A DNA stretch of 64,000 nt from Thalia democratica (Eukaryota). Positions 17,098-64,000 of the stretch are shown here, piece after piece (position 1 is the first letter of the stretch; each line of letters starts with the position of its first letter). The DNA is taken from the NCBI GenBank assembly GCA_965202585.1, contig OZ241827.1:22444001-22508000 (forward strand), given 5' to 3'. A program made the translations under genes and the position numbers. The notes beneath the pieces were generated by a model. That model saw only the letters and a program-made list of their open reading frames with translations. It made no database searches and was not told the origin of the DNA.

Positions 17098-17595
17098 CTA
17101 ACAAGTTGAGCATGCATCCTCGCAGTGCTTTTTGCATTCACTTTTCGAAACTGCTAACTGTGCGAACTCGATTATGGCAAACGAGTTCTTTTCTTGCGCG
17201 TCGTAATAAACGCTCAGTCCGTTTATTACGCCAAAACGGGCGTACAAATTCATTAAATCTTCAGCGATTAAATTCCAACAGTCAAAACGGTCCAAGTCAA
17301 CTTTAATGTGCAGGTTGTCGGGACGGAGTTCACGGCTTTCGACTTTGTTAAAATTACCAGCTGCAGCGTCAGTCAGCTCTGCTTGAAAGCGTTCTCCCTC
17401 GACGTCGACGAAAGCGACCCGGCTGGCGACCAGCGGGTCCTCAAACTCGACCATCGCGTCGCCTTCAAATCCCAGTTCGTCGTTGAAGTAGTGCAGCTCG
17501 ACGCTCCTCACCGTGCCGTGATACTTGACACTCTCCAGGATCGATTTGGGGCGGAGGAAGGGGGACAGTCCGTTAATGGTGACAGTGGTTTGCAT
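17098..17595 (-). CDS. Intronless protein with two divergent RRM-like domains (165 aa)
   Basis: TVTINGL...EGDAMVEFED is RNP2/RNP1-like. The second module is DLMNLYARFGVI...SFAIIEF. GC-rich coding sequence with an acceptor TTTTTTTCAG| 9 nt before the ATG. Confidence 0.7.
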   Translation of the reverse strand: MQTTVTINGLSPFLRPKSILESVKYHGTVRSVELHYFNDELGFEGDAMVEFEDPLVASRVAFVDVEGERFQAELTDAAAGNFNKVESRELRPDNLHIKVDLDRFDCWNLIAEDLMNLYARFGVINGLSVYYDAQEKNSFAIIEFAQLAVSKSECKKHCEDACSTC

Positions 17596-18798
17596 TGTGA
17601 TTGGCTGAAAAAAAAATAATGTAAATTTTTTGTATACAGGCTTGTTGTAAGATGCTTTAACAAAAATGTACTTTTACTTGTTTATTCAAGTAAGTTTATA
17701 TAGTAATAGTTTGAGGAGTTTTGTAACTTTTAAACTTTTAATGATTAAATAGTTTTGTATGTGTTTAATAAGGCTAACATATTTTGACAAAACAACAAAC
17801 ATACATGCTTAATTGCTGAGATTTTGTTTAAATATATCTATTTTAGCTTAAATACTTCTTCAATAATTAATATGCTTCGAAATTAAAACATAAAACTTTT
17901 AAAGTGATTGATTTAACATTGAAGCTCTAATCAAACAAAACTTGAGGTAAACAACTTAAACGAGTGATTATTAATTTGTGTCAATAGATACAAATATTCG
18001 AAAAATGATTGTTTTCTATACATAGTTGTGCATGAAAGTATCAAATTCTAATCTAATTAAAACGCTTTGCAACTAATTTCAGTATGTTAAAAGCATAAAT
18101 TTGATTACAAAGTGAGATATAACTAATCAAAAAGCAAAACAACCGGCATAACAAGGTTAAAAGTGTACATTTTTTAAGAAAAGAATGAACTTTTTATATG
18201 TGATTAATACAATACTTGCATATACTAAAAAAGTAGTGTTATTCAAACTTGTACAAAACAATCTTAAAGATATAAATTGTTAAAATTGTTTTTATACATT
18301 GACTTTTTTCGTTTTAAAACTTATTAAATACCATACAATATATTGTCTTAAAGAGCCAGTAGTTTCAGAAAAGTATTAAACATATAATAAGCTGTTTATA
18401 AAGTAAAGGTTTAGTACGTTCAAGATTAAGCTTTAGTTTTACTTTTTTTTGTTTAGAGAACTGCCGTATATTTCTAGCATTTTACAAAACAACTTTTATC
18501 TTCCGTAAAACTGTAAAATTCTTGTAGTTTAGTTAGAAATTAAAGATATATTATCTGCTTCACTTAGCCAAGTAAATTCGCTACGTTTCAAGATTTTATT
18601 TAAATTTAAGTAACTCTAGGTGATAATAAATTTATTGTATTTTAGTTAGTTTATGTAATAAAATATAAATAAGCAGATTAATTATTAAAAGTTTGAGTTA
18701 GTACTCTTTTTAAAAATTTATATAAAAGATTTAAAAGATCTAATATAATGTCAAAGTTTTAATATGTAGATAAATAGATTTTTACATATAGTGTACAC

Positions 18799-45684: not shown

Positions 45685-46233
45685 CGTTATTTAAAAAATC
45701 AAACACAAAACAAAAACAAGACAAAACAGACAAAACTTCACAGTTATTGTGGCTTCAAATAAATACGTTTAATCTTTAAAAAATTTTAAACTGTAGTCAT
45801 GGTAACTACCAGATTTTTTGTTCGCTTTGAGCTTTATGTACTTCAATATTTTAAATTAGTATTTATCAAAAAATTAAATTTATCTTAATTAAGGAAATTG
45901 ATAGTATGAATTTAACTATTGGTTGCTATGATCACAATCTAATTATTTATACAACTTTATTGTTTTTTATTGCGAATCTCAACCAATATCTTCTCTAGAT
46001 GCTTAATATAAATTAGTTCTATTGTAAACTGCAAAGTTAAAGCTAATCTAATGCAAGCTTTAAATAAAAGTTAAAATTCAATATACAAGATGACAACTAA
46101 TGTTAACTCATTGAAAGAGAAATCAAAAAACTTGATTTTAGCGAACCTACGTAACAATAAAAACAAGATACTAACAAAATTTTAGAAATTAAATTTATAT
46201 TTGTATATTTTGAAAATATACAAAAAAAGCACG

Positions 46234-46839
46234 ATGAAATTTCTACTCATTCTCGCGTTTCTCCTTCTTGCTTTACTTCCTGCCTCGATTGCCGACCAGT
46301 GCCGCGTCAACTCCACCAAAGTCGACTGCGCCGATTTCAACTTTCCCGGCGGAGGCTGCTGCGGAAAGTCGTTCTGCTGCGAGTCGGTGTTCGGGAGAAT
46401 TGCGAGAAATGCGACTTCAAGCGGACAAAGTATTTGCTCTCGCCAGTGCGACGAAAATTTCTGCTGTCCGCTTTTCACTTGCTGCCAGCCGAACCTCCAA
46501 GTTGGCAACTCCTCGCAAACTTCCGTGGTCTACTACAAGCGCGCCACCATGTTTCTGACCCTGGCAGTTTCCTTCGTTACCATGGCAACCGTGTTGATGT
46601 GCGTCTGTTGTCACGGTTGCGACCGAAACAGGTGGAGGACGGACTTGGACCAGAGCGAGGCAGTCAGGGCTTTCAGGTCGCGGTACCCGACGGTTGTCAG
46701 GGACACGAGGGCGGTGGTTTACGTTGTCAGGGAGCCGAGAGTGGCCGTTGTCAAGAACATTGTCAGAAACGCGGGAGATTTTCCTCCGAATTACAATGAA
46801 GCGGCTTCTGACTACAACAAGTACCCGATAAGAAAATAA
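46234..46839 (+). CDS. Shisa-like (WBP1/VOPP1/TMEM92-type) single-pass membrane protein with two 6-Cys modules and a PPxY motif (201 aa)
   Basis: Signal peptide MKFLLILAFLLLALLPASIA. C..C..CC..CC occurs twice. TM FLTLAVSFVTMATVLM is followed by CVCCHGC. The C-terminus contains PPNY. Intronless and GC-rich. Confidence 0.8.
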   Translation: MKFLLILAFLLLALLPASIADQCRVNSTKVDCADFNFPGGGCCGKSFCCESVFGRIARNATSSGQSICSRQCDENFCCPLFTCCQPNLQVGNSSQTSVVYYKRATMFLTLAVSFVTMATVLMCVCCHGCDRNRWRTDLDQSEAVRAFRSRYPTVVRDTRAVVYVVREPRVAVVKNIVRNAGDFPPNYNEAASDYNKYPIRK

Positions 46840-48960
46840 ATAAATGAAATGCAATAATGTTATCTTGTTTTTCGTTCATAAGACAAATAAAGACTCAAAA
46901 GTTACAATTCAAAGTTACGCTAAACGAAATTGATTAAGAAACCTTTTTTAAATAGTGACTTATGTTTGATTTTTTTACTTAAAACTAGAACCAAAACCAA
47001 ACTATTCAAACACTACGACTTTTAGTAAAATATAAAAGTGTTAAAAATACTTAAATCAAATTTTAAATGTGCTTTGTACCTATAAGAGAAAGTAGAGCAA
47101 AGTTAGTTGTTTGTAAAAAAAATTAAAAACATGTTATGAAAAAATCATGACACGGTTTTTAAAACTATAAACTGATTTAAAACTAACATCGTATTTTACA
47201 ATTATTAGTTGCACTTTATTTTTTATTATATTTTTAATCACTTCTACATTTATTGTATTTTTTTGTATTTATTTTTAATAAACTTATAATATAGACTAGT
47301 GTAGGTACATAAATTACTTTTACTATATTAAAAAAACATGTAGATTAATGCTTTGAATTTTATAATGTTTGACATCACTAATGCATTAGATTAATGATCT
47401 ACATAATTGTTTTATAAATTTTATATGCTATCTAGCCATATTTATTACATTAATTAAATAGATTGAAATTAAGATACCTTCAAATCTTAAAAAATACAAA
47501 TCTAGATGGGTAATATTTTCAAAAGTACCAGTAAAGTAAAGACATTTTTTTCTCATTTTGCTTTGAACTTGAACATTTGCGTTTTACAAATTAAATTATT
47601 TTATTCAAAGTTTCGTAAAAGACGTTTTTCGTTTGTTCAATATTTGGATATAACTATTTTATAAACAACCTCGTTTAGTTTTTACAGTGAAGTTTGTGTA
47701 TAATCTCTAAAGCTTTTATAATCAGTAAAAAGGTTCTAAAGTTATCTTGATAATAAATAGAATATAATTAATAGAAACAATTAGTTTAAGATATGTTTTT
47801 TATGTAAATTTTACTAATTAAACAAATATAAAAACGATATAATAATACTAAGAAGATACTAAAGAAACTAAAAAAGGTTTGTACTAAGTGTTATTATCAA
47901 AAGTCTATTGTGACTCATAATAGTAAAAAAGCAACAATATAATTGTTTACTAAAAATATATAAAACAAACAATTATAAACTTTTAATGACTGCTTAGATG
48001 TTTTTTTAGTTTGTTTATAAAAAACTTATTTTTTCTTATCAAGGGTAAAAGATTGTTTGTTTTTTTTAAATGAAATATGCTACAACTTCATTTTTCACAT
48101 TAAAAATACTTTTTTATTTTAGGCACCATTTAGAACATAAAACTAAATTTTAAAAAAATTGCGGTTTTGTGTATAGTTTTATGTTGTAATTACAAATGTT
48201 AAACAAATTTGGTTGCTTTCAGTTCCTATGAAAATACCTTAGAAGTTAAATTTCTTTTTTTTTAACACTTCGGTCATTTCACAATAAAAACCTTCGTTAC
48301 TTTAATTTAATTAAGTTAAAGAGGTTTAAAGTGTTCTAACGTGAAAATTTTAAAACGAATTTCACTAACTAAAGTGTGTATGAGAAATTTTTAAGTTTAG
48401 TATTACTGTTTAACTTCTAAAACACAAGGATCTTCTGAAGTTTTTCGTCAAATATGTCAAAATATTTTTGGTTAACTTCATTGATAAGCCGTTTAAATTA
48501 ATCGCGAAAACAAAAAAAAATTGTTTTATTTTATTATACCACTGGAGTAAGTAAGCAAAAGTTCGTGAGCATTAAAAACTTAAAAGAAACTTACTTTAAA
48601 CGCACACTCAAAAGAAACTCGGTCTTTTCTTGTTCACCACAAATGCGACAAAACACAGTTTTACTCACAAAAAACGCTGAAGCTTTCGTGTTTTGAATAA
48701 CGTGAACGGTGTGACAACGTCACCATACAGCATTTCCTGAAGTTTTCTATAAGTAGAATATTTGATGATTCAACGTGTGCGAAGTACAAGTAGCTTTTTT
48801 GTGATATACGTTACTTAAATGCACGATGAAATTGTTTGATAGACAGCTATTTTGTTGATATTCTAGTTTTTTTACATAGTTGTTTTACATTAACATTTTT
48901 AAGTTTTAAGCAGAAAAATGTAAAGTGTGTTTTGTTTTCATTACAGAAAGTTCTTTTATA

Positions 48961-56095: not shown

Positions 56096-58587
56096 TTTTT
56101 AAAATGTTTACCTCCTCGCGAAAGTCTGATAACTTCTTAAAACTTTGAACGTTGTTAACTGTAAAAGATATTAAAACTTTAGTTTTACTCCAGCTTATTT
56201 TTAAACTGTGCAACTTTGTTTGTCTTTTTTGAAAACAATCATACTTTTACACAAATGTATAAGTTTATATAATTTTTTGTTAAGCCGACTATGATTTAAT
56301 GCTATTGTTTTTAGACTTTATTTTAAAGTTTTTTCTCGTAATTACTTGTCTTCTTGTGTTAAAATAAAAAAATGTTTTTCACATAAAACTTTAATGAGTA
56401 AATTCTAATTAAAACTTCATTATTGAATACATATATAACTAAAGTTTTAAATTATGCTAATTATTAAAGTCGTTTACCTTAAACTTTTATATATTAAATC
56501 TGTTTTGTATAAAACGTTTTTCCACAAAGTTCATAAAAACTTTTAGCTTATCAATTTAAAAAAATACACATGATTAAAACTAATCGTTTTACTGCTTGTT
56601 ATGCAAATAATCCTTTTTAATATATATTTTAAGTTTTTAATACATTTTTGTTTATTTTGAAATTCAAAACATACTAATACTTTGAAAGTATTTTACAGTA
56701 AATTCTAGTTGAACACGGCTAAACTGTTACGTAATGAAGAAATTTAGTAATAAATTTTAATAAATAGACTACAAAAAACAATTAATTGAGTTGTTAAAAA
56801 AGTTCCTTTGTGTTTTTCTTTCTACTATGTTTGTACATAACAACTAACTAAATGAAGTGTTCCTTTTTAATTGGAACGCTTAATTATGTATTAAAGTTAT
56901 TTTGCAAAATATTTGTAACTTACACACCACATAAACAAACCGTAGTTAAGTAAAACTAACTTAAAATTAAATTTAAAACAAGTTTTTTGATTTTAGATTA
57001 TGAAATTGTTAAATTATTTTAAAATAATGTTTTTCAAGAAATTTAGGAAAAAAATAAAAAAGCCTTGAGGTAAAATTTATATTTATTGTTTATGTATAAA
57101 AGTAGTGAAATTGTTATGCAGTTTTATCTTCTTTACTTTAAAAAAAAGATAACTACTTTCCATAACTGTAAAGTTTAAGTTTTAGTAACAAATAATCTAC
57201 TTTTAGATTACACTTCAAGCATAGCGCTATTGGTTATTTTCTAAGATAACTTAAAGCAACTTTTATAACGTGATTATATAGTAAATGTATTTTATTTTTT
57301 GAGATTTGATGAAAACAAGATACCTTGACTTAAAAACTGCTTATTTATGTTTTTTTATATACAAATACTCAAACGCAGCGATTTTTATTTCATATTCAAA
57401 CTTACAGTCACGCATTATTGTTTTGTACTAAAATTTAATATACATTAATTATTTTAATTATGAATAAAAATATTAATTATATTTAAAATATCAAGTTAAA
57501 AGTAACTTTTCACTTTAAACAATTAGCCTCATGACATTGTTTTTGTTTAAGTTTTGATTTTTTAGGCAGTGTATCCAACAAATTTAACTTTTATCTTTAT
57601 TTTTAGTATTGGGTCAGTTATTAAAACTTTACTTTAATCTTCACTAATTTTTTTTTATAATGCTACTGTTTTGTCAAAGGTTGTTAATTAAATTTTTATT
57701 GTTTAGAAAGCGTTTTGTTAAAGCTGAGTTCCTTAAAGACGTTAAGAATCCGATTATTATTTTGGAGTTTTTAACTATAAAGTTTTAACTATAGGATTTT
57801 TTAATGCGGATACTTTATTAAGCTAAGGTGCAAATGATAAACTAGATCTATTTGTAAACTTACCAACCTAAAAAAATAAATAAACTCTACTAGCTTACTT
57901 TTATGCATACGTTTAAATATAAAAGTTTTTAATACAAAAATTTAATCATCCTATAGTTTTAAAACAAGTTTAAAATTATTGAAATAAAAGTTTATATCTA
58001 AAATTTATTATCGACACTTTCACAGTTTTCAAACGTGTATAAAAATAGTTCTTTATTTAGTTTTTTGTTTTTTAATTTAAGATCTAATGCCTATTGTTTT
58101 AATTTTAGTTTTTAGTTAACATTTAAATTAGATGTCCTATTTTTCCTCCAATCTAATGCCTAGACTTAGTAGTCACTTTCCGAGAGGTTTATCAAGACTT
58201 GTCGGTCAAATTTGTACAAAACATAAATTAATAGGTTACTCGGTAATAATTCAAAACTATGCGATAATTACAAAGAAACGCGAAAATGTCAATAAATTTA
58301 CTTTAAAACTAACAACTACAAAATTTTAAAGATTTTAAAGGCTTTAAGACAAAATTTTTAAAGTCATTATGCAAAAATAAGGTTATTAGATTTGTTATAT
58401 TTGAATAAAAGTTTAGTAACAAACGAAGTTATAGTTTAAGGCAAGCAAATGCAAAAACTTTCCACTATTTTTTGCAAATAAATTGTGCAAATTGTAAGAT
58501 AATAATCTTAAACAAGCTATACTATACGTATCTTTAAATATTAAAATTTTGCTTAAAACACCTATATGTTTAGATTTTAAATAAACA

Positions 58588-59595
58588 ATGAACAACCCAA
58601 AAGAGCTGAAAACCTTACCATTTCCCTACTTCAGCAAGTGGAAAGACAAAAGCTCCAAAAACACCGCTTTCACGGTCGAGTGGCTGCGGCCGTACCAAAT
58701 ATGCAAAAATCCCCTGTTCTACTCAAAACACGGCCCGAGCCGCAACGACGTCATACAGGGCTTCATCGGCGACTGCTGGGTCGTCGGGCCCATCTCGAAC
58801 CTGGCGTCCAATCACGAAATGCTGAACAAGGTCGTACCTTGCGGGCAGGGCTTCGAAAGGGGCAAGTACGACGGAACCTTTCACTTCAGGTTCCACTCCT
58901 TGACCGGTTGGAAGGACGTCTACATAGACGACATCCTGCCCACAATCAACAGGAAACTGATGTTCGCCCACTCGAAGCGGCACGACGTCTTCTGGGCGCC
59001 GCTGCTCGAGAAGGCCTACGTCAAGTTCGTCGGCTGCTACGAGAACGTTAACAGGGGCGGCGTGTCGTCGGTGACCAACTACCACTTCACCGGCCTGCAC
59101 TCTCGGAGCTTGAGCCTGAGAAAAACTTTGTGGCTGAAGCCCGACCCGTTCAGAGTGCTGCAAGTCCTCGAGCTGAGCTTCGAGTCCAAGTCGTTGCTGT
59201 CGTGCTCCCCCAAGCGCAAGCACAGAGCCGTGGGGAACGTTTTGTTCCAGCACGACCACGTGTACAACGTGACGGGGCTGAAGTTGCGCAGGAGCGACCC
59301 GCTCAAATCCAAAGTGAGGGTCAAGTCCCTGCAGGGGAACATCACCCGGCTCGAGAAGCAGCCGGTCGTGAAAAGCAACAGCAAAGGGGTGTGTAAAGTG
59401 AAACGTGGCAACAGAGCGACGTACTTGGACTGCCAAAAAGGCGATGAGTTTTACATTTCTTTCAAGTGTTTCGTGGATCTGATGGACTCGGTGAAGATAT
59501 GCGGAAATGAGGGCAAGGGAGTGTCGTTCTGCGACAAGTACCTGAACTATGGCCTGATCGCCATTCAAAACATTTTCATCAGAACTTACCTTTGA
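58588..59595 (+). CDS. Intronless calpain-like protein, catalytic (CysPc) domain only (335 aa)
   Basis: WLRP..I...P, QGFIGDCW (catalytic Cys), YIDDILPT, FWAPLLEKAYVK, DHVYNV (catalytic His), EFYISF. The canonical RNPWG reads KSLQG. Confidence 0.85.
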   Translation: MNNPKELKTLPFPYFSKWKDKSSKNTAFTVEWLRPYQICKNPLFYSKHGPSRNDVIQGFIGDCWVVGPISNLASNHEMLNKVVPCGQGFERGKYDGTFHFRFHSLTGWKDVYIDDILPTINRKLMFAHSKRHDVFWAPLLEKAYVKFVGCYENVNRGGVSSVTNYHFTGLHSRSLSLRKTLWLKPDPFRVLQVLELSFESKSLLSCSPKRKHRAVGNVLFQHDHVYNVTGLKLRRSDPLKSKVRVKSLQGNITRLEKQPVVKSNSKGVCKVKRGNRATYLDCQKGDEFYISFKCFVDLMDSVKICGNEGKGVSFCDKYLNYGLIAIQNIFIRTYL

Positions 59596-62500
59596 TACAC
59601 TACCTCTCAATTTTGATTTGTTTCCATTAAAACGATTAAAGAACTTGCTTCGTTTTTTAATATTTTACAACTTGTAATTTCAAAGTTTGATAAGTATTTT
59701 TTAGTGGCTTGCTATCACAAAATTTACAAAGTAAAGTTAGAGTATTAGTAATTTTTTTTAGTCAATTCTAGTATTTAAAATGTACTTATGATATACCAAC
59801 TAATATACTAAATTTATATGCATTAAACTTGTGATGTCAAACATAAAATATCAGTTTAATTAACCTTTAAAACATAAATGTATACAGTAAAACTTTGAAA
59901 GAAAATTTACCTTAAAAAACAAAACTATTTATCTACGAAAAATAAAATTACTTGCTTTATTTTATTTAAACTACTGTAACTTATTTAGAGAACTTTTTAA
60001 TGAGACAACTTAATATCAATTATTTAACATAAGTAAGGCAAAAAACAGCTTAGGTTTTTTATAATCAGCAAAGTTTAAAATAGTATTTACTAATTAAGTT
60101 TTTAAATTTTATGAATTGAAATATTTAGTGTCTTATCTATGCAAGATAATCATAATGTGATTATCGTTTTCAATGCGCTTTATTAAAACATATATTTAAG
60201 TTATTTTGTATTATAGTATTTTCGTTGTTTTAAACTAGTTTTAGGTTAGATCAATTTGTGTAAGTTTAATACTAAGAGCTTTAAAAAATTTTATATTTCA
60301 TATGTTTACATTACAATATTGTTTACATACAAACTTGTATTTTTTGCGCACTCATTTATACATTTTTTTGTAGTTTTAACCTTTATAAAAATAACTTAAA
60401 CATTTATGCTAGATTGTCTTGATTAAAGAGCACTTGAACTTATACTTAAAATTTTTTTTTATAGATTTTTAAGTTCAGATTTTCTTTTTTTATATCATTT
60501 TCAAACAACTTATGCTACAACAACTAGTTTTTTCAAGTTTCATATAAAATTCTAAGTTGATAATCACTCAAAACCTTTTCTTTTAAAAATCACAGCTTAA
60601 ACTGCCAATTTTTTTAAAACTTAATAGTTTTTAATAAATATGTGCTTTTGTTTTCTAACTTATTAGCAGTTTCGAACTTTAAAGTGTTTATTGCGTTAAC
60701 ATAATAATCATGAGCACTAACTTTTTTGTTGCAATAGCCGTAAACTGTAGTTTAAACTGAACAATTATTTATAAATTATATGCCAGTGCAGCAAGTTTAA
60801 ATAATTGTTAGTTTAAAATTTATGCGCACAAAACAGCTTAAAATAAAATTTAAAAAAACAACATTTCGACAACTTGTCTTACCAAACTAAGTTTGAAACA
60901 TACCCAAATCATTTATACATTTAGTTATTTAGATAATACTAAAATGAAAAAGACATCATACAAATAGCTTGTCTAGCTTACACTAAACTAAACTAACAAT
61001 AGCTTTCACTACAATTTTTTAGTTACACTAATCCGAACATTGAAACAAAAGTATATTTGCTTCTCTACCCGAATTTAGAACATAAGTTGTTATAGAAATA
61101 AAATATGATTATTGAGCAGTTTATGAAGTAGTAGTTTAATTAGTTTTATCTTAACATACTTTTTCCGTATTGTATTCCTTTGATTGTATTTTTACGACAC
61201 TTGTTTTACAAAGAAAAACTTAAAGGTCATAAATATTTTCTAGTAAATATTAAGATATAATTTTGTAAACTCTATTAATAGAAGAAATGCTCTTCGAACA
61301 AATTTTAACTTTAAAAAATAGCATTTAAAAAAAGTAAGATCGAACTTACATACCGACGCTTTGCATTTATCAACGATTTTTTGTAAATGAACATAAAAAT
61401 ACAAACTTTAAGCTTTTTATTTTAATTTTTTAAACTACTATAAAAAGCCAATTTGTTATAGAGACTTAATATAAAATAGATAGAAATATGAAAATATAAA
61501 ACTATTTTTCAACAAATATTTTGGTCAGTGTTTAGCAAAACTTATACATTCTTTTTACATAAATGTCAAATCTTTTATTATCTTAGCTCGTACTTTTAAA
61601 TTTAGCGCATAAAATTTATCAAGTAAGTCTGCAAAACAGGTGAGACTCAGCAAAAAATATATACTGTAAAAAACTTACAAAAACACTTAAGTGCTAGAAA
61701 ACATACTAACGTGTTAAATGAAGTTTAATTAAACATATACATTTGTTTATTCAAACATTGGTATAAGGAAAAAGAGACATTAGCTGTTGAATTGATTACT
61801 AAGTATTTATCTTTTTTCGAATTTGCAGTATTCTAAGCCTAAATGTATTGAATTAAAACAAATAGCAGAAAATAAAGGTTATAAAATATAAGTTAAAAAA
61901 ACATGTCACTTTTAAGAGCTTTATTATTTTATAGGAATGGTTACGAGGTAAATCAAATAATAATAGATACACTTTTGATTATTAAATGGATAAACTTAAG
62001 CAATATTTCATTTTGTTTTTAAAAAAGAACTATAATTCTAGTAGTTTCAAGTTTAAATAAAACTATAGTACTACAATCATATTGTTGTACTATGTAGTTG
62101 TTATGTTTAGTAAGAAACTTCATTTTAGTTTATTATATTTTTATTTTTTGGCCTAGTTTTCATTCTGATACTTTTAAAAAGACATTTTTTAAACCTTACC
62201 ATAACTTTTGATCAATCATTAAATTTATTCATCTATTTTAATATGGTCATATAGTCAGTAATCAAAAATTACAGTCTATTCATTTAAGTTATTTCAAATT
62301 AAAACTTATTATGATGTTCAGCACTTGAAAATCATTACTACAAATTGGCTATGTTGATGATTGTGTAATAAAATTATATATGTAAAACTTATAAATTCAA
62401 AAACTTTTAATCATTTACTTCATAATTTAAAAAGTTGCAGAATTGGTACTTTAAAGCATAATGTAATTAAAGTTTTTGTGTTAAGGCATGATTTTTAGTA

Positions 62501-63066
62501 TTTGTTTTCAGTAAAGTTTAGTAGTGAGCAAGCACTGTTTAAGTTTTCTTTGTATGATTAAAAACTTATACAGTTTTTTGTTTTTCATTTTTTAAACTTT
62601 CATGTAGTTAGATTCAGCATAGTTTCTAAATGATTAATGTTTATTAAATCAATTAAACAGTTCAATTTAGCTAAAATGAAACTTAAACTTGATCTACTTA
62701 AACAGAAGAACTTAAAATCTATGTTTTTTTTTTTAAATATTAAATTTATTAGAAAACCTGCTAAAGTTAACTCTTTTTGGTTTCTATAATTTAAAGGTTA
62801 TTTTACCAAATGACAATAGCTTAAAACAATCTAAACTCTGTCTATGTTTAACAAGTAATTTGAATTTATTTACGAAGCAACACTAGTGAATTTTAAATTC
62901 TGGTACATTAAAACTTTAAGGCTAATTATATATATTAATAAAGATTATAGTATATAAAGAACCATCACTAACTAAGCAAAGTTTTTAGATAGAAATAAAT
63001 AATATTTTAACAAGACTTTAAAGCTTTTAATTTTATTTTAATAAATTTCAGTTGTAAAATTTTATC

Positions 63067-64000
63067 ATGAGCATTTCTCTCGGTCATTTACTAGGTGAAG
63101 ACAACCAAAAGCTGCCAGATGCTTCTAGGGCCGCTTCGGGTGACTTAATCGCGGGTCCCTCACCCGTCAACCGCACTTACCTCCCGCCATACAAAGTGCA
63201 CGTCAGCTACATCCCGACCAAGCCTCAGCTTTACGAGGTGGAGAAGTTCTTCAAACCTGCCGAAGTCGTGAGCAGCACTTTCACCAAGGTCAAGAAGAGG
63301 TTCTACGGCGTTGTCGAGCTCAAAACGCTCAGGGATTTCCGGCTGGCTCTGGCCCGCAACGGGTCGACTTTTTGCGGTAGGAAGGTGAACGTTCAGGTGT
63401 CCAAAGACACTGTTGTAAAGTTGCTGGAGCCTGAGTCCAGCAGGCCTGCTTGTCCGAGTACAGTTGTTAGAAAGGGACCGTTTGTGTCTAAACAGACCGA
63501 TGGTGAAGGAGACTGTTCCGAAAAATGCAATAAAGCTGTTTCTGATCCTCCGAAGCTTTCATGGGCTGACGAGGTACCACCGCAAGAAGATGGCAGTTGT
63601 TTTGATGCAACTGAGGATAAAGTTCACGCCAGCCCTCGACGCTTCAACTTCATAAGCGCCAAGCTCTTTTCTCCTGACGACCTCGCGAAAGTTTCCAACA
63701 GGCCGCCTTTCCGCGCCTTCGTCGGCAACATCGCCTACTGGGTGGACGAGCAGATGCTGGCCAAGTTCTTCAAACCCGCCGTCGTGACAAACATCACTTT
63801 CATGTTCAAGAACGACAAGCCAAAGGACTGCGCCACGGTCGAGTTCGAGTACGTCGAGGACTACGTGGTGGCGCTGAAGAAGAACGGGAGGAGGTTCGAG
63901 AAGAAGGCAATGAGGGTGGAGGTCGCCGGCAGGTCGAACAGCAACCAGGTCCGGAACCCCTTCGCCACGTACGGCAGCGACGGAAACTGGAGGAAAAAAC
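63067..64000 (+). CDS. EIF4B: Intronless eIF4B-like protein with two RRMs, 3'-partial (runs off the window)
   Basis: Open frame from ATG 63067 to the window end, missed by the ORF track because it has no stop. MSISLGHLLGED, LSWADEV, NRPPFRAFVGNIAY...VEF...ALKKNG...MRVEVA and SDGNWRKK match recalled eIF4B motifs (TISLTDFLAED, SWADE, PPYTAFLGNLPY, TDTDWR). Confidence 0.7.
   Translation, partial: MSISLGHLLGEDNQKLPDASRAASGDLIAGPSPVNRTYLPPYKVHVSYIPTKPQLYEVEKFFKPAEVVSSTFTKVKKRFYGVVELKTLRDFRLALARNGSTFCGRKVNVQVSKDTVVKLLEPESSRPACPSTVVRKGPFVSKQTDGEGDCSEKCNKAVSDPPKLSWADEVPPQEDGSCFDATEDKVHASPRRFNFISAKLFSPDDLAKVSNRPPFRAFVGNIAYWVDEQMLAKFFKPAVVTNITFMFKNDKPKDCATVEFEYVEDYVVALKKNGRRFEKKAMRVEVAGRSNSNQVRNPFATYGSDGNWRKK

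Follow-up and report, generated by a model that had tools for sequence, protein, structure and literature searches.

The translation initiation factor eIF4B stimulates the eIF4A helicase. It has been described as a protein with a single structured domain, one RNA recognition motif (RRM), that works through disordered regions (bioRxiv 10.1101/2024.06.21.600094; PMC9598784). Its N-terminus binds PABP and its RRM binds 18S rRNA; the DRYG region mediates self-association and the binding of eIF3a; and an arginine-rich region (ARM) supplies the main affinity for RNA (PMC9598784; bioRxiv 10.1101/2024.06.21.600094). Paralogs of RNA-binding and translation proteins are also known among retrogenes, of which RBMXL2 is an example expressed in the germline (PMC6345566). 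Here we describe a gene of Thalia democratica that begins near the 3' end of a 64,000-nucleotide stretch of chromosome C2 (G000:C2:22444001-22508000; 'the window'). The gene is probably a functional, lineage-restricted paralog of eIF4B with five tandem eIF4B-type RRMs and no DRYG region, and may act as a multivalent adaptor. To judge from its sequence it is clearly derived from eIF4B, and yet it fails three features that define the family: the single RRM, the DRYG region and the box close to the ARM.

The window holds the first part of the coding sequence (63067..64000, + strand; codons 1-311 of 716). The 3' continuation was read from the same chromosome, past the window end, in a segment designated L002, whose positions plus 63000 give window-equivalent positions. 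The whole open reading frame (ORF) occupies L002:67-2217 (G000:C2:22507067-22509217, + strand), extends 1217 nt beyond the window to window-equivalent position 65217, and ends with a TGA at L002:2215-2217 (window-equivalent 65215-65217). All 716 codons are uninterrupted, and the coding part contains no intron. An in-frame TAA at 63055-63057 identifies the ATG at 63067 as the true start. The gene forms an island of 53-58% GC between flanks of ~21% GC, and is present in the genome as a single copy. Just upstream of it, at 63046..63066 (+), a splice-acceptor-like TTTCAG is followed by a 15-nt leader, with the AG at 63050-63051, 16 nt before the ATG. A T-rich tract, CAG, the sequence (C)TT[GA]TAAA(A)TTTT[AG]T[CG] and the ATG are kept in all three species from which the gene is known (T. 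democratica and two known from metagenomes, called here species 2 and species 3); sequence farther upstream does not align. This putative acceptor could serve spliced-leader trans-splicing, or it could close an intron in the 5' untranslated region; 5' splicing of the transcript, in trans or in cis, is probable. At the other end, an AATAAA lies 129 nt 3' of the stop (L002:2346-2351, +), in a block common to species 2.

A sequence-only reading of the window had proposed an eIF4B-like retrogene with two RRMs, one of them inserted between the N-terminal motifs. The strings on which it drew are all present, and in the order it gave, in the translation of 63067-63999 (+): ISLGHLLGED (residues 3-12), RRM-A (LPPYKVHVSYIP..EKFFKPAEV..RFYGVVEL..ALARNG..VNVQVS; residues 39-112), SWADE, and RRM-B (RPPFRAFVGNIAY..AKFFKPAVV..KDCATVEF..ALKKNG..MRVEVA; residues 212-287). 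Both of these RRMs are real; the count was too low, however, for there are five (A to E), three of them past the window end, and the DRYG region has gone as well. Nor is the frame disrupted downstream, as that reading had allowed it might be; it is intact to the TGA.

From the N- to the C-terminus, the protein comprises an N-terminal box (N-box), RRM-A, a linker of ~90 residues that includes the motif SWADE, RRM-B, RRM-C, RRM-D, RRM-E, and a tail of 104 residues. The N-box, SISLGHLLGED (63070..63102, +; residues 2-12), resembles MSLGDFV, TLGLSEFL and MSLGAFLED of canonical eIF4Bs, and KKMDLGEFL of the eIF4B encoded elsewhere in this genome, on chromosome C7. The succession that marks the family—an N-box (K/S-x-[ILM]-S-L-x-[DE]-F-L) and then SWADE, as in the comparators P0002, P0003, P0133 and an exon of the C7 gene—is present here too. 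SWADE itself (63559..63573, +; residues 165-169) is shared with P0002, P0003 and the C7 exon (MSWADESEV). RRM-A (63172..63414, +; residues 36-116), with the RNP2 motif V-H-V-S-Y-I, lies between these two landmarks, and because of its insertion they are 152 residues apart, versus 22 in the genome's canonical eIF4B; the placing of an extra RRM at this point was thus correct. RRM-B (63679..63942, +; residues 205-292; lead RPPFRAF) follows SWADE, and is succeeded by RRM-C (L002:1039-1302, +; residues 325-412), RRM-D (L002:1339-1602, +; residues 425-512) and RRM-E (L002:1639-1902, +; residues 525-612). The lead VP/VS-x-x-PP[FY]-x-A-[FYH] opens RRMs B, C, D and E, and LPPYKVH opens RRM-A. Pfam finds five RRM_1 stretches in the protein (E 4e-32); scanned singly, the domains return E values of 3e-3 (A), 1e-8 (B), 9e-12 (C), 6e-6 (D) and 3.5e-3 (E). 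An AlphaFold2 model, for which five orthologous sequences served as input, has five beta-alpha-beta-beta-alpha-beta domains, with predicted local distance difference test (pLDDT) scores of 60-86 and RRM-A the highest. Its linkers are disordered, and a single helix, residues 649-679, is predicted in the tail.

The RRMs have mostly lost the aromatic residues of RNP1. In the genome's canonical eIF4B this octamer is K-G-Y-G-Y-V-E-F; in the paralog it reads R-F-Y-G-V-V-E-L (RRM-A), K-D-C-A-T-V-E-F (B), K-G-C-A-F-A-E-F (C), L-G-D-V-I-A-E-F (D) and K-G-S-V-I-L-S-F (E), the aromatic having gone from position 3 in four of the five RRMs and from position 5 in four of the five. RRM-B lacks both, as the window alone had indicated, and does so in all three species. 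Since the same losses recur in the orthologs, they are old, maintained features rather than signs of recent decay.

The DRYG-rich region is missing outright: the greatest fraction of D, R, Y and G in any 60 residues is 0.35, versus 0.45-0.65 in four canonical proteins. The motif FG.AKP has no match in the protein, and no LQPRT/FGGAKPVD box is detectable in it. The tail (L002:1903-2214, +; residues 613-716) ends in NKFAVLPGEEKLV and includes a C-terminal box (C-box), NKFAVLPGEE, at residues 704-713. We considered whether the tail segment SLRQRP...NFGAYKAEKEREK descends from the LQPRT/FGGAKPVD box, and dropped the idea because hhalign, run against the canonical region, gave E 0.19 and a probability of 0.3%; together with the predicted helix, the segment is only suggestive, a colinear look-alike of the ARM-proximal box. 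The acidic C-terminal end, [NS][KR]F[AS]xL, is NKFAVLPGEE in T. democratica and NRFSMLPVDE in species 2, and is absent from species 3. It occurs in 5 of 25 eIF4B-type matches, versus 1 of 127 other matches.

The genome also encodes an ordinary eIF4B. A search with the canonical eIF4B P0003 located a multi-exon locus on C7 (~46.148-46.154 Mb, minus strand) with at least six exons and at least five introns; it has one RRM, one of its exons encodes a DRYG region, and FG.AKP boxes occur twice. One exon reads KKGKKMDLGEFL...MSWADESEV; the RRM (LPAEPRSAR...VPDHGPFTAFIGNMHYETTEDTVAKFFGDLR) is interrupted by a phase-0 intron, GTGAGT...CAG, and resumes with ILGIRLMENEHGKLKGYGYVEFETRGDLVEALKKNMQNMLNRALKIDVAESK; the DRYG exon reads GGYNNRGGGGFNRGNDRYGNRGEQ...; and the later exons include KRLVIQPRT and two with FG.AKP[IV]DT. 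As this intron-bearing canonical gene lies on C7, the five-RRM gene on C2 is a paralog, as the sequence-only reading had inferred.

How the paralog came about is a more balanced question. Origin by retroposition is plausible but unproven, and we put its chances at about even; the competing explanation, duplication of the gene at the DNA level, after which every coding intron was lost, with no retroposition involved, strikes us as somewhat improbable. Several features are those of a retrogene: the copy is intron-free (both in the genome assembly and in the five contigs from metagenomes), the parent bears introns, and the two are unlinked (C2 versus C7). The phase-0 intron that splits the canonical RRM is missing from all five RRM copies, and the simplest explanation is that the copy was already intron-free when its RRM was amplified. 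This absence, and the location of the two genes on different chromosomes, tell against duplication with intron loss.

Other observations weigh against retroposition or are neutral, and several of them favor duplication. The only hallmarks of retroposition that the gene displays are its lack of coding introns and its location on a chromosome other than the parent's. Long single-exon ORFs are found elsewhere in this genome: a CstF-64-like frame of 500 residues (L034:3094-4596; G000:C8 ~47.573 Mb), an RBM19-like open frame of at least 689 residues (L018, C8 ~52.333 Mb, minus strand) and an eIF3g-like frame of 341 residues (L031, C7 ~39.347 Mb, minus strand). Intron-poor housekeeping genes thus seem common in T. 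democratica, and an intron-free state is not unusual here. Neighboring genes of the same strand likewise seem to consist of one exon each, an observation either adverse to retroposition or neutral. Conservation of the AG acceptor points to splicing of some kind near the 5' end, of a 5' intron or in trans. And neither a poly(A) relic nor a target-site duplication is recognizable in the flanks of the gene, which are ~80% A+T. There is an A-run 45 nt after the AATAAA, and the ortholog contigs end before it; in an old gene with flanks of this composition it is uninformative, and we rejected it as proof of retroposition. The term 'retrogene', then, is plausible insofar as the coding part is intron-free, and unproven insofar as the AG acceptor upstream is conserved and single-exon genes are common in the genome.

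Descent from eIF4B stands on firmer ground. In a word-index search the paralog retrieved one ortholog cluster and otherwise only the canonical eIF4Bs P0002 and P0003, both of which have the N-box, SWADE, one RRM, a DRYG-rich middle and the LQPRT and FGGAKPVD boxes; of the two, only P0003 has the C-terminal end NKFAFLQAED. The N-box, SWADE and C-box of the paralog are colinear with those of canonical eIF4B. We built trees, on 89 alignment columns, the first of them from 97 RRMs: 14 from the five-RRM family (three species), 48 that carry the eIF4B/4H lead, and a further 35 taken from the match list. All 14 family RRMs are placed within the eIF4B-type clade, which excludes 30 of the 35 others (Shimodaira–Hasegawa-like approximate likelihood-ratio test, SH-aLRT, 92), and share a subclade with the RRM of the genome's own eIF4B. 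Each of the positions A to E forms a separate clade of the three species (two species for D), and in a second, more careful tree of 77 rows the RRM-A and RRM-B clades are supported at 100/98 and 99/100. Judged by its terminal boxes, by SWADE, and by RRMs nested in the eIF4B-type clade, the protein is derived from eIF4B, as the sequence-only reading had it.

The relationships among the five positions are looser. The 97-RRM tree pairs RRM-A with RRM-B, if weakly (80), and unites RRMs C, D and E (83); in the 77-row tree a single origin of all 14 RRMs is not rejected (approximately unbiased test, p-AU 0.6), the constrained tree being better by 5 log-likelihood units. Internal duplication had been proposed from the shared string KFFKPA.V. 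The string itself is weak evidence, because RRM-A of the orthologs reads EKLFGPCEV and KNFFDSCSI at this point, and the case for duplication comes instead from the profiles and the tree. Since each position has its own ortholog clade within the eIF4B-type clade, the five-fold array is older than the three-species split; on the phylogenetic evidence, the five RRMs are the product of internal duplication of an eIF4B RRM before that split.

It is highly unlikely that the gene encodes, instead, a generic multi-RRM protein (of the nucleolin, RBM or GRSF1 type) with eIF4B-like motifs acquired by convergence. Nucleolin and other multi-RRM proteins do match the single RRMs well, and RRM-A taken alone is a marginal case (Pfam 17.7 bits, under the cut-off of 20.7) with no significant sequence match in the PDB. 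Yet the lead PP[FY]-x-[AV]-[FYH], which is typical of eIF4B/4H RRMs, is found on all five domains; the placement of A to E in the tree separates them from most of the other RRMs sampled; and three eIF4B-specific linear motifs stand in the right order. Nor does RRM-A belong to an unrelated family. Its three-species profile matches the profile of RRMs B to E (hhalign E 5e-17) and that of canonical eIF4B-type RRMs (E 5e-14), and it groups with the latter. Modeled singly, it has the beta-alpha-beta-beta-alpha-beta fold (pLDDT 82.5), for which the best match among solved structures is the human eIF4B RRM, 1wi8 (E 2e-5, template-modeling score 0.75), other RRMs being close behind. The top PDB sequence match of RRM-B is likewise eIF4B 1wi8 (1e-6), and RRM-C matches eIF4H 2dng (1.6e-11) and eIF4B 2j76 about equally, both at ~1e-11.

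Equally little can be said for the view that the locus has no function, being a defunct processed pseudogene derived from eIF4B or an open frame that arose by chance; we consider this very improbable. In its favor are an intron-free coding part on a chromosome other than that of the intron-bearing parent, a ratio of nonsynonymous (dN) to synonymous (dS) divergence that is high, at ~0.5, and the lack of RNA evidence. Against it stand the orthologs. When 1.84 billion representatives were searched exhaustively with HMMER, two orthologous clusters emerged, P0001 (species 2; 722 residues, 70% identity) and P0010 (species 3; 619 residues, 46% identity, from a Tara Oceans metagenome), the next match being a generic multi-RRM protein at 2e-29; a scan of JGI metagenomes found no relative. 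P0004, P0005 and P0159, further members of the clusters, were recovered from other samples, and in all five metagenomic contigs the gene is uninterrupted, intron-free and flanked by AT-rich sequence. Six sequences, representing three species, thus have the 716-codon frame open; synonymous sites have reached saturation in comparison with species 3, and protein divergence of 30-54% rules out contaminating copies of one sequence. Species 3 has deleted the C-terminal half of RRM-D, in frame, reads SWCEL in place of SWADE, and has a shorter tail.

Selection can be gauged from the same comparisons. Between the T. democratica gene and species 2, dS is 0.37, dN 0.19 and omega (dN/dS) 0.50 (Nei-Gojobori; Fisher p 2e-8), these and the following values being pairwise counts rather than codon-model fits. 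By region, omega is 0.29 in RRM-A, 0.30 in RRM-B, 0.42 in RRM-C, 0.39 in RRM-E, 0.90 in RRM-D and 0.68 in the tail, and pairs within species give 0.45-0.67. Random mutation to the observed synonymous distance introduces a mean of 11-19 stops, and leaves the frame open in 0 of 1000 neutral replicates. A coding GC content of 52-55% has been upheld against 21% in the flanks. Two sequencing runs, X1 and X3, yield DNA-like contigs that cover the gene and its flanks; in X3, which represents a second individual or a close relative (~1-2% different), the ORF is intact and free of indels. At least 21 differences from the reference fall in the ORF (20 in X3, 1 only in X1), 7 of them synonymous and 14 not; among the nonsynonymous differences listed, 8 of 14 are in the tail. 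Taken together, the open frames, the excess of dS over dN, the simulations, and the conserved acceptor and AATAAA indicate that the five-RRM gene codes for protein, that selection on it is purifying but relaxed, and that its RNA-processing signals have been conserved. The gene is, by these measures, kept open by selection and yet fast-evolving, with an array that predates the three-species split.

The last alternative, that the five-RRM gene is simply this lineage's ordinary eIF4B, as sole ortholog or as a form general in tunicates, would accommodate the N-box, SWADE, the eIF4B-type RRMs and the C-box, but it can be set aside as scarcely credible, given the one-RRM eIF4B with DRYG and FG.AKP boxes on C7, an architecture that the HMMER search found in no clusters beyond the two, both of unnamed marine-metagenome proteins, and the empty JGI scan; nor, within the reach of that search, is the architecture general in tunicates.

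What the paralog does can be proposed from its domain content. Most likely, an intron-free, processed copy of eIF4B was formed, and its RRM was then duplicated internally. The product would be a single-chain, multivalent, eIF4B-like adaptor on messenger ribonucleoprotein particles (mRNPs) or initiation complexes. RRMs that mostly lack the stacking aromatics of RNP1 may bind RNA weakly or in a non-canonical way, or may bind protein. Five of them could provide in cis the multivalency that canonical eIF4B gains in trans through DRYG self-association, and the terminal boxes, being retained, would keep the protein docked to the partners of eIF4B. Without DRYG, neither self-association nor canonical binding of eIF3a is expected, and for this reason the protein is more likely to regulate translation or mRNP assembly, in a specialized or competing role, than to be a second general eIF4B. 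Fast evolution, and the pattern of a paralog of a housekeeping gene, would fit germline-restricted genes. A more specific version of the proposal is that five weakly RNA-binding RRMs are a covalent substitute for DRYG oligomerization, and that the protein is a stage- or germline-specific regulator of translation which, by way of its terminal boxes, occupies eIF4B partners and forms a different, non-condensing mRNP. We think this unlikely; were it true, the gene would be a natural experiment that separates the multivalency of eIF4B from its low-complexity region.

Some findings pull away from the picture of a functional eIF4B-like adaptor. The tail has no significant similarity to the ARM-proximal region of eIF4B. 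Constraint is weak, with dN/dS at 0.5 overall and 0.9 in RRM-D. No RNA run containing the gene was found, two runs of unknown type from the same samples (X6 and X7) having given just short spurious matches. And binding partners are suggested by domain content, as is the mechanism as a whole.

Several other features of the locus and genome may be recorded. Searches of the genome with the whole protein, with RRM-C and with canonical eIF4B found no further paralogs beyond the gene itself, the C7 eIF4B and unrelated RRM genes, the latter being the CstF-64-like, RBM19-like and eIF3g-like genes and a family on C6. The C6 family (G000:C6 7.28-9.66 Mb; L021, L022, L024-L028 and L030) accounts for at least nine matches, to ORFs of ~300 residues with an RRM-like region and a Q/N-rich tail, and looks like a lineage-specific, expanded RRM gene family. 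A second RBM19-like copy (L020; G000:C5 ~37.327 Mb), split by a stop into frames of 314 and 294 residues, may be an intron-bearing paralog or else a pseudogene. Within the window, two apparently single-exon frames lie 5' of the eIF4B paralog on the same strand: a calpain-like frame of 336 residues (58581-59620, +) and a secreted-looking, Cys-rich frame of 205 residues (46221-46840, +). A GC-rich island at 17101-17620 (-) has an open frame of 173 residues with an RRM-like stretch (GDAMVEFEDPLVASRVAF). About 2.4 kb past the window end is a very high-copy repeat (L003:4817-5148; G000:C2:22510383-22510714), whose summed contig depth in two DNA runs is ~1.4e5-2.1e5, versus ~50-93 for single-copy sequence.

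Among known proteins, eIF4H shares the RRM subtype of the five-RRM paralog, as the matches of RRM-C illustrate, and likewise has no DRYG region. It is a protein of ~250 residues with one RRM and no N-box, SWADE or C-box; the paralog, unlike eIF4H, has all three of these motifs. Retrogenes of the RBMXL2 type resemble it in being intron-free paralogs of intron-bearing housekeeping genes for RNA-binding proteins, on another chromosome, that evolve faster than the core factor. They differ in that germline expression is a property of theirs, and in that domain amplification has no counterpart among them.

Tandem eIF4B-type RRMs have arisen elsewhere. A protein of Dreissena polymorpha named 'eukaryotic translation initiation factor 4B-like' (XP_052212595; P0015) has two, and three unnamed proteins (P0021, P0058 and P0028) have two each; P0046 (L037:277-2307, from Logan SRR11430617), of 676 residues, starts with NWADDE and has four, in a clade of their own. 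The repeats of these proteins, which have the PPF lead, cluster with each other rather than with A to E, which marks them as independent amplifications, and none of the proteins has five RRMs or an RRM before SWADE. Another D. polymorpha protein (P0019; XP_052212212), annotated 'zinc finger CCCH-type antiviral protein 1-like', has two eIF4B-type RRMs fused to a CCCH zinc finger and WWE-like sequence, and is an unrelated reuse of the eIF4B RRM. The names of the Dreissena-type eIF4B-like proteins are automatic annotations only; we found no description of these proteins in papers, and full-text literature searches found no paper that describes a multi-RRM eIF4B, the human protein being described as one with a single structured RRM. 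The reach of the present case is limited, in that the family is narrow and such tandem arrays evolved independently in other lineages; it nonetheless illustrates cleanly how, once the gene for a core translation factor has been duplicated, a domain can be amplified in one copy.

The closest relative is canonical metazoan eIF4B, as represented by human EIF4B and the C7 gene. The two have in common, in the same order, the N-box, SWADE, an RRM with the lead PP[FY]TA[FY], and the acidic end [NS][KR]F[AS]xL, and their RRMs are nearest relatives in the tree. They part company in that the paralog has five RRMs rather than one, including one before SWADE; in that it has no DRYG region and no recognizable LQPRT/FGGAKPVD box; and in that its coding part is intron-free, its RNP1 aromatics are mostly lost, and its dN/dS is 0.5. 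Comparison of the paralog with the canonical eIF4B of the same animal could show which activities of the factor depend on the low-complexity region, and for which multivalent RRMs suffice. In at least three species, the paralog reverses the usual design of eIF4B: the DRYG region has been removed, the folded RRM has been multiplied five-fold, and both terminal docking motifs have been kept.

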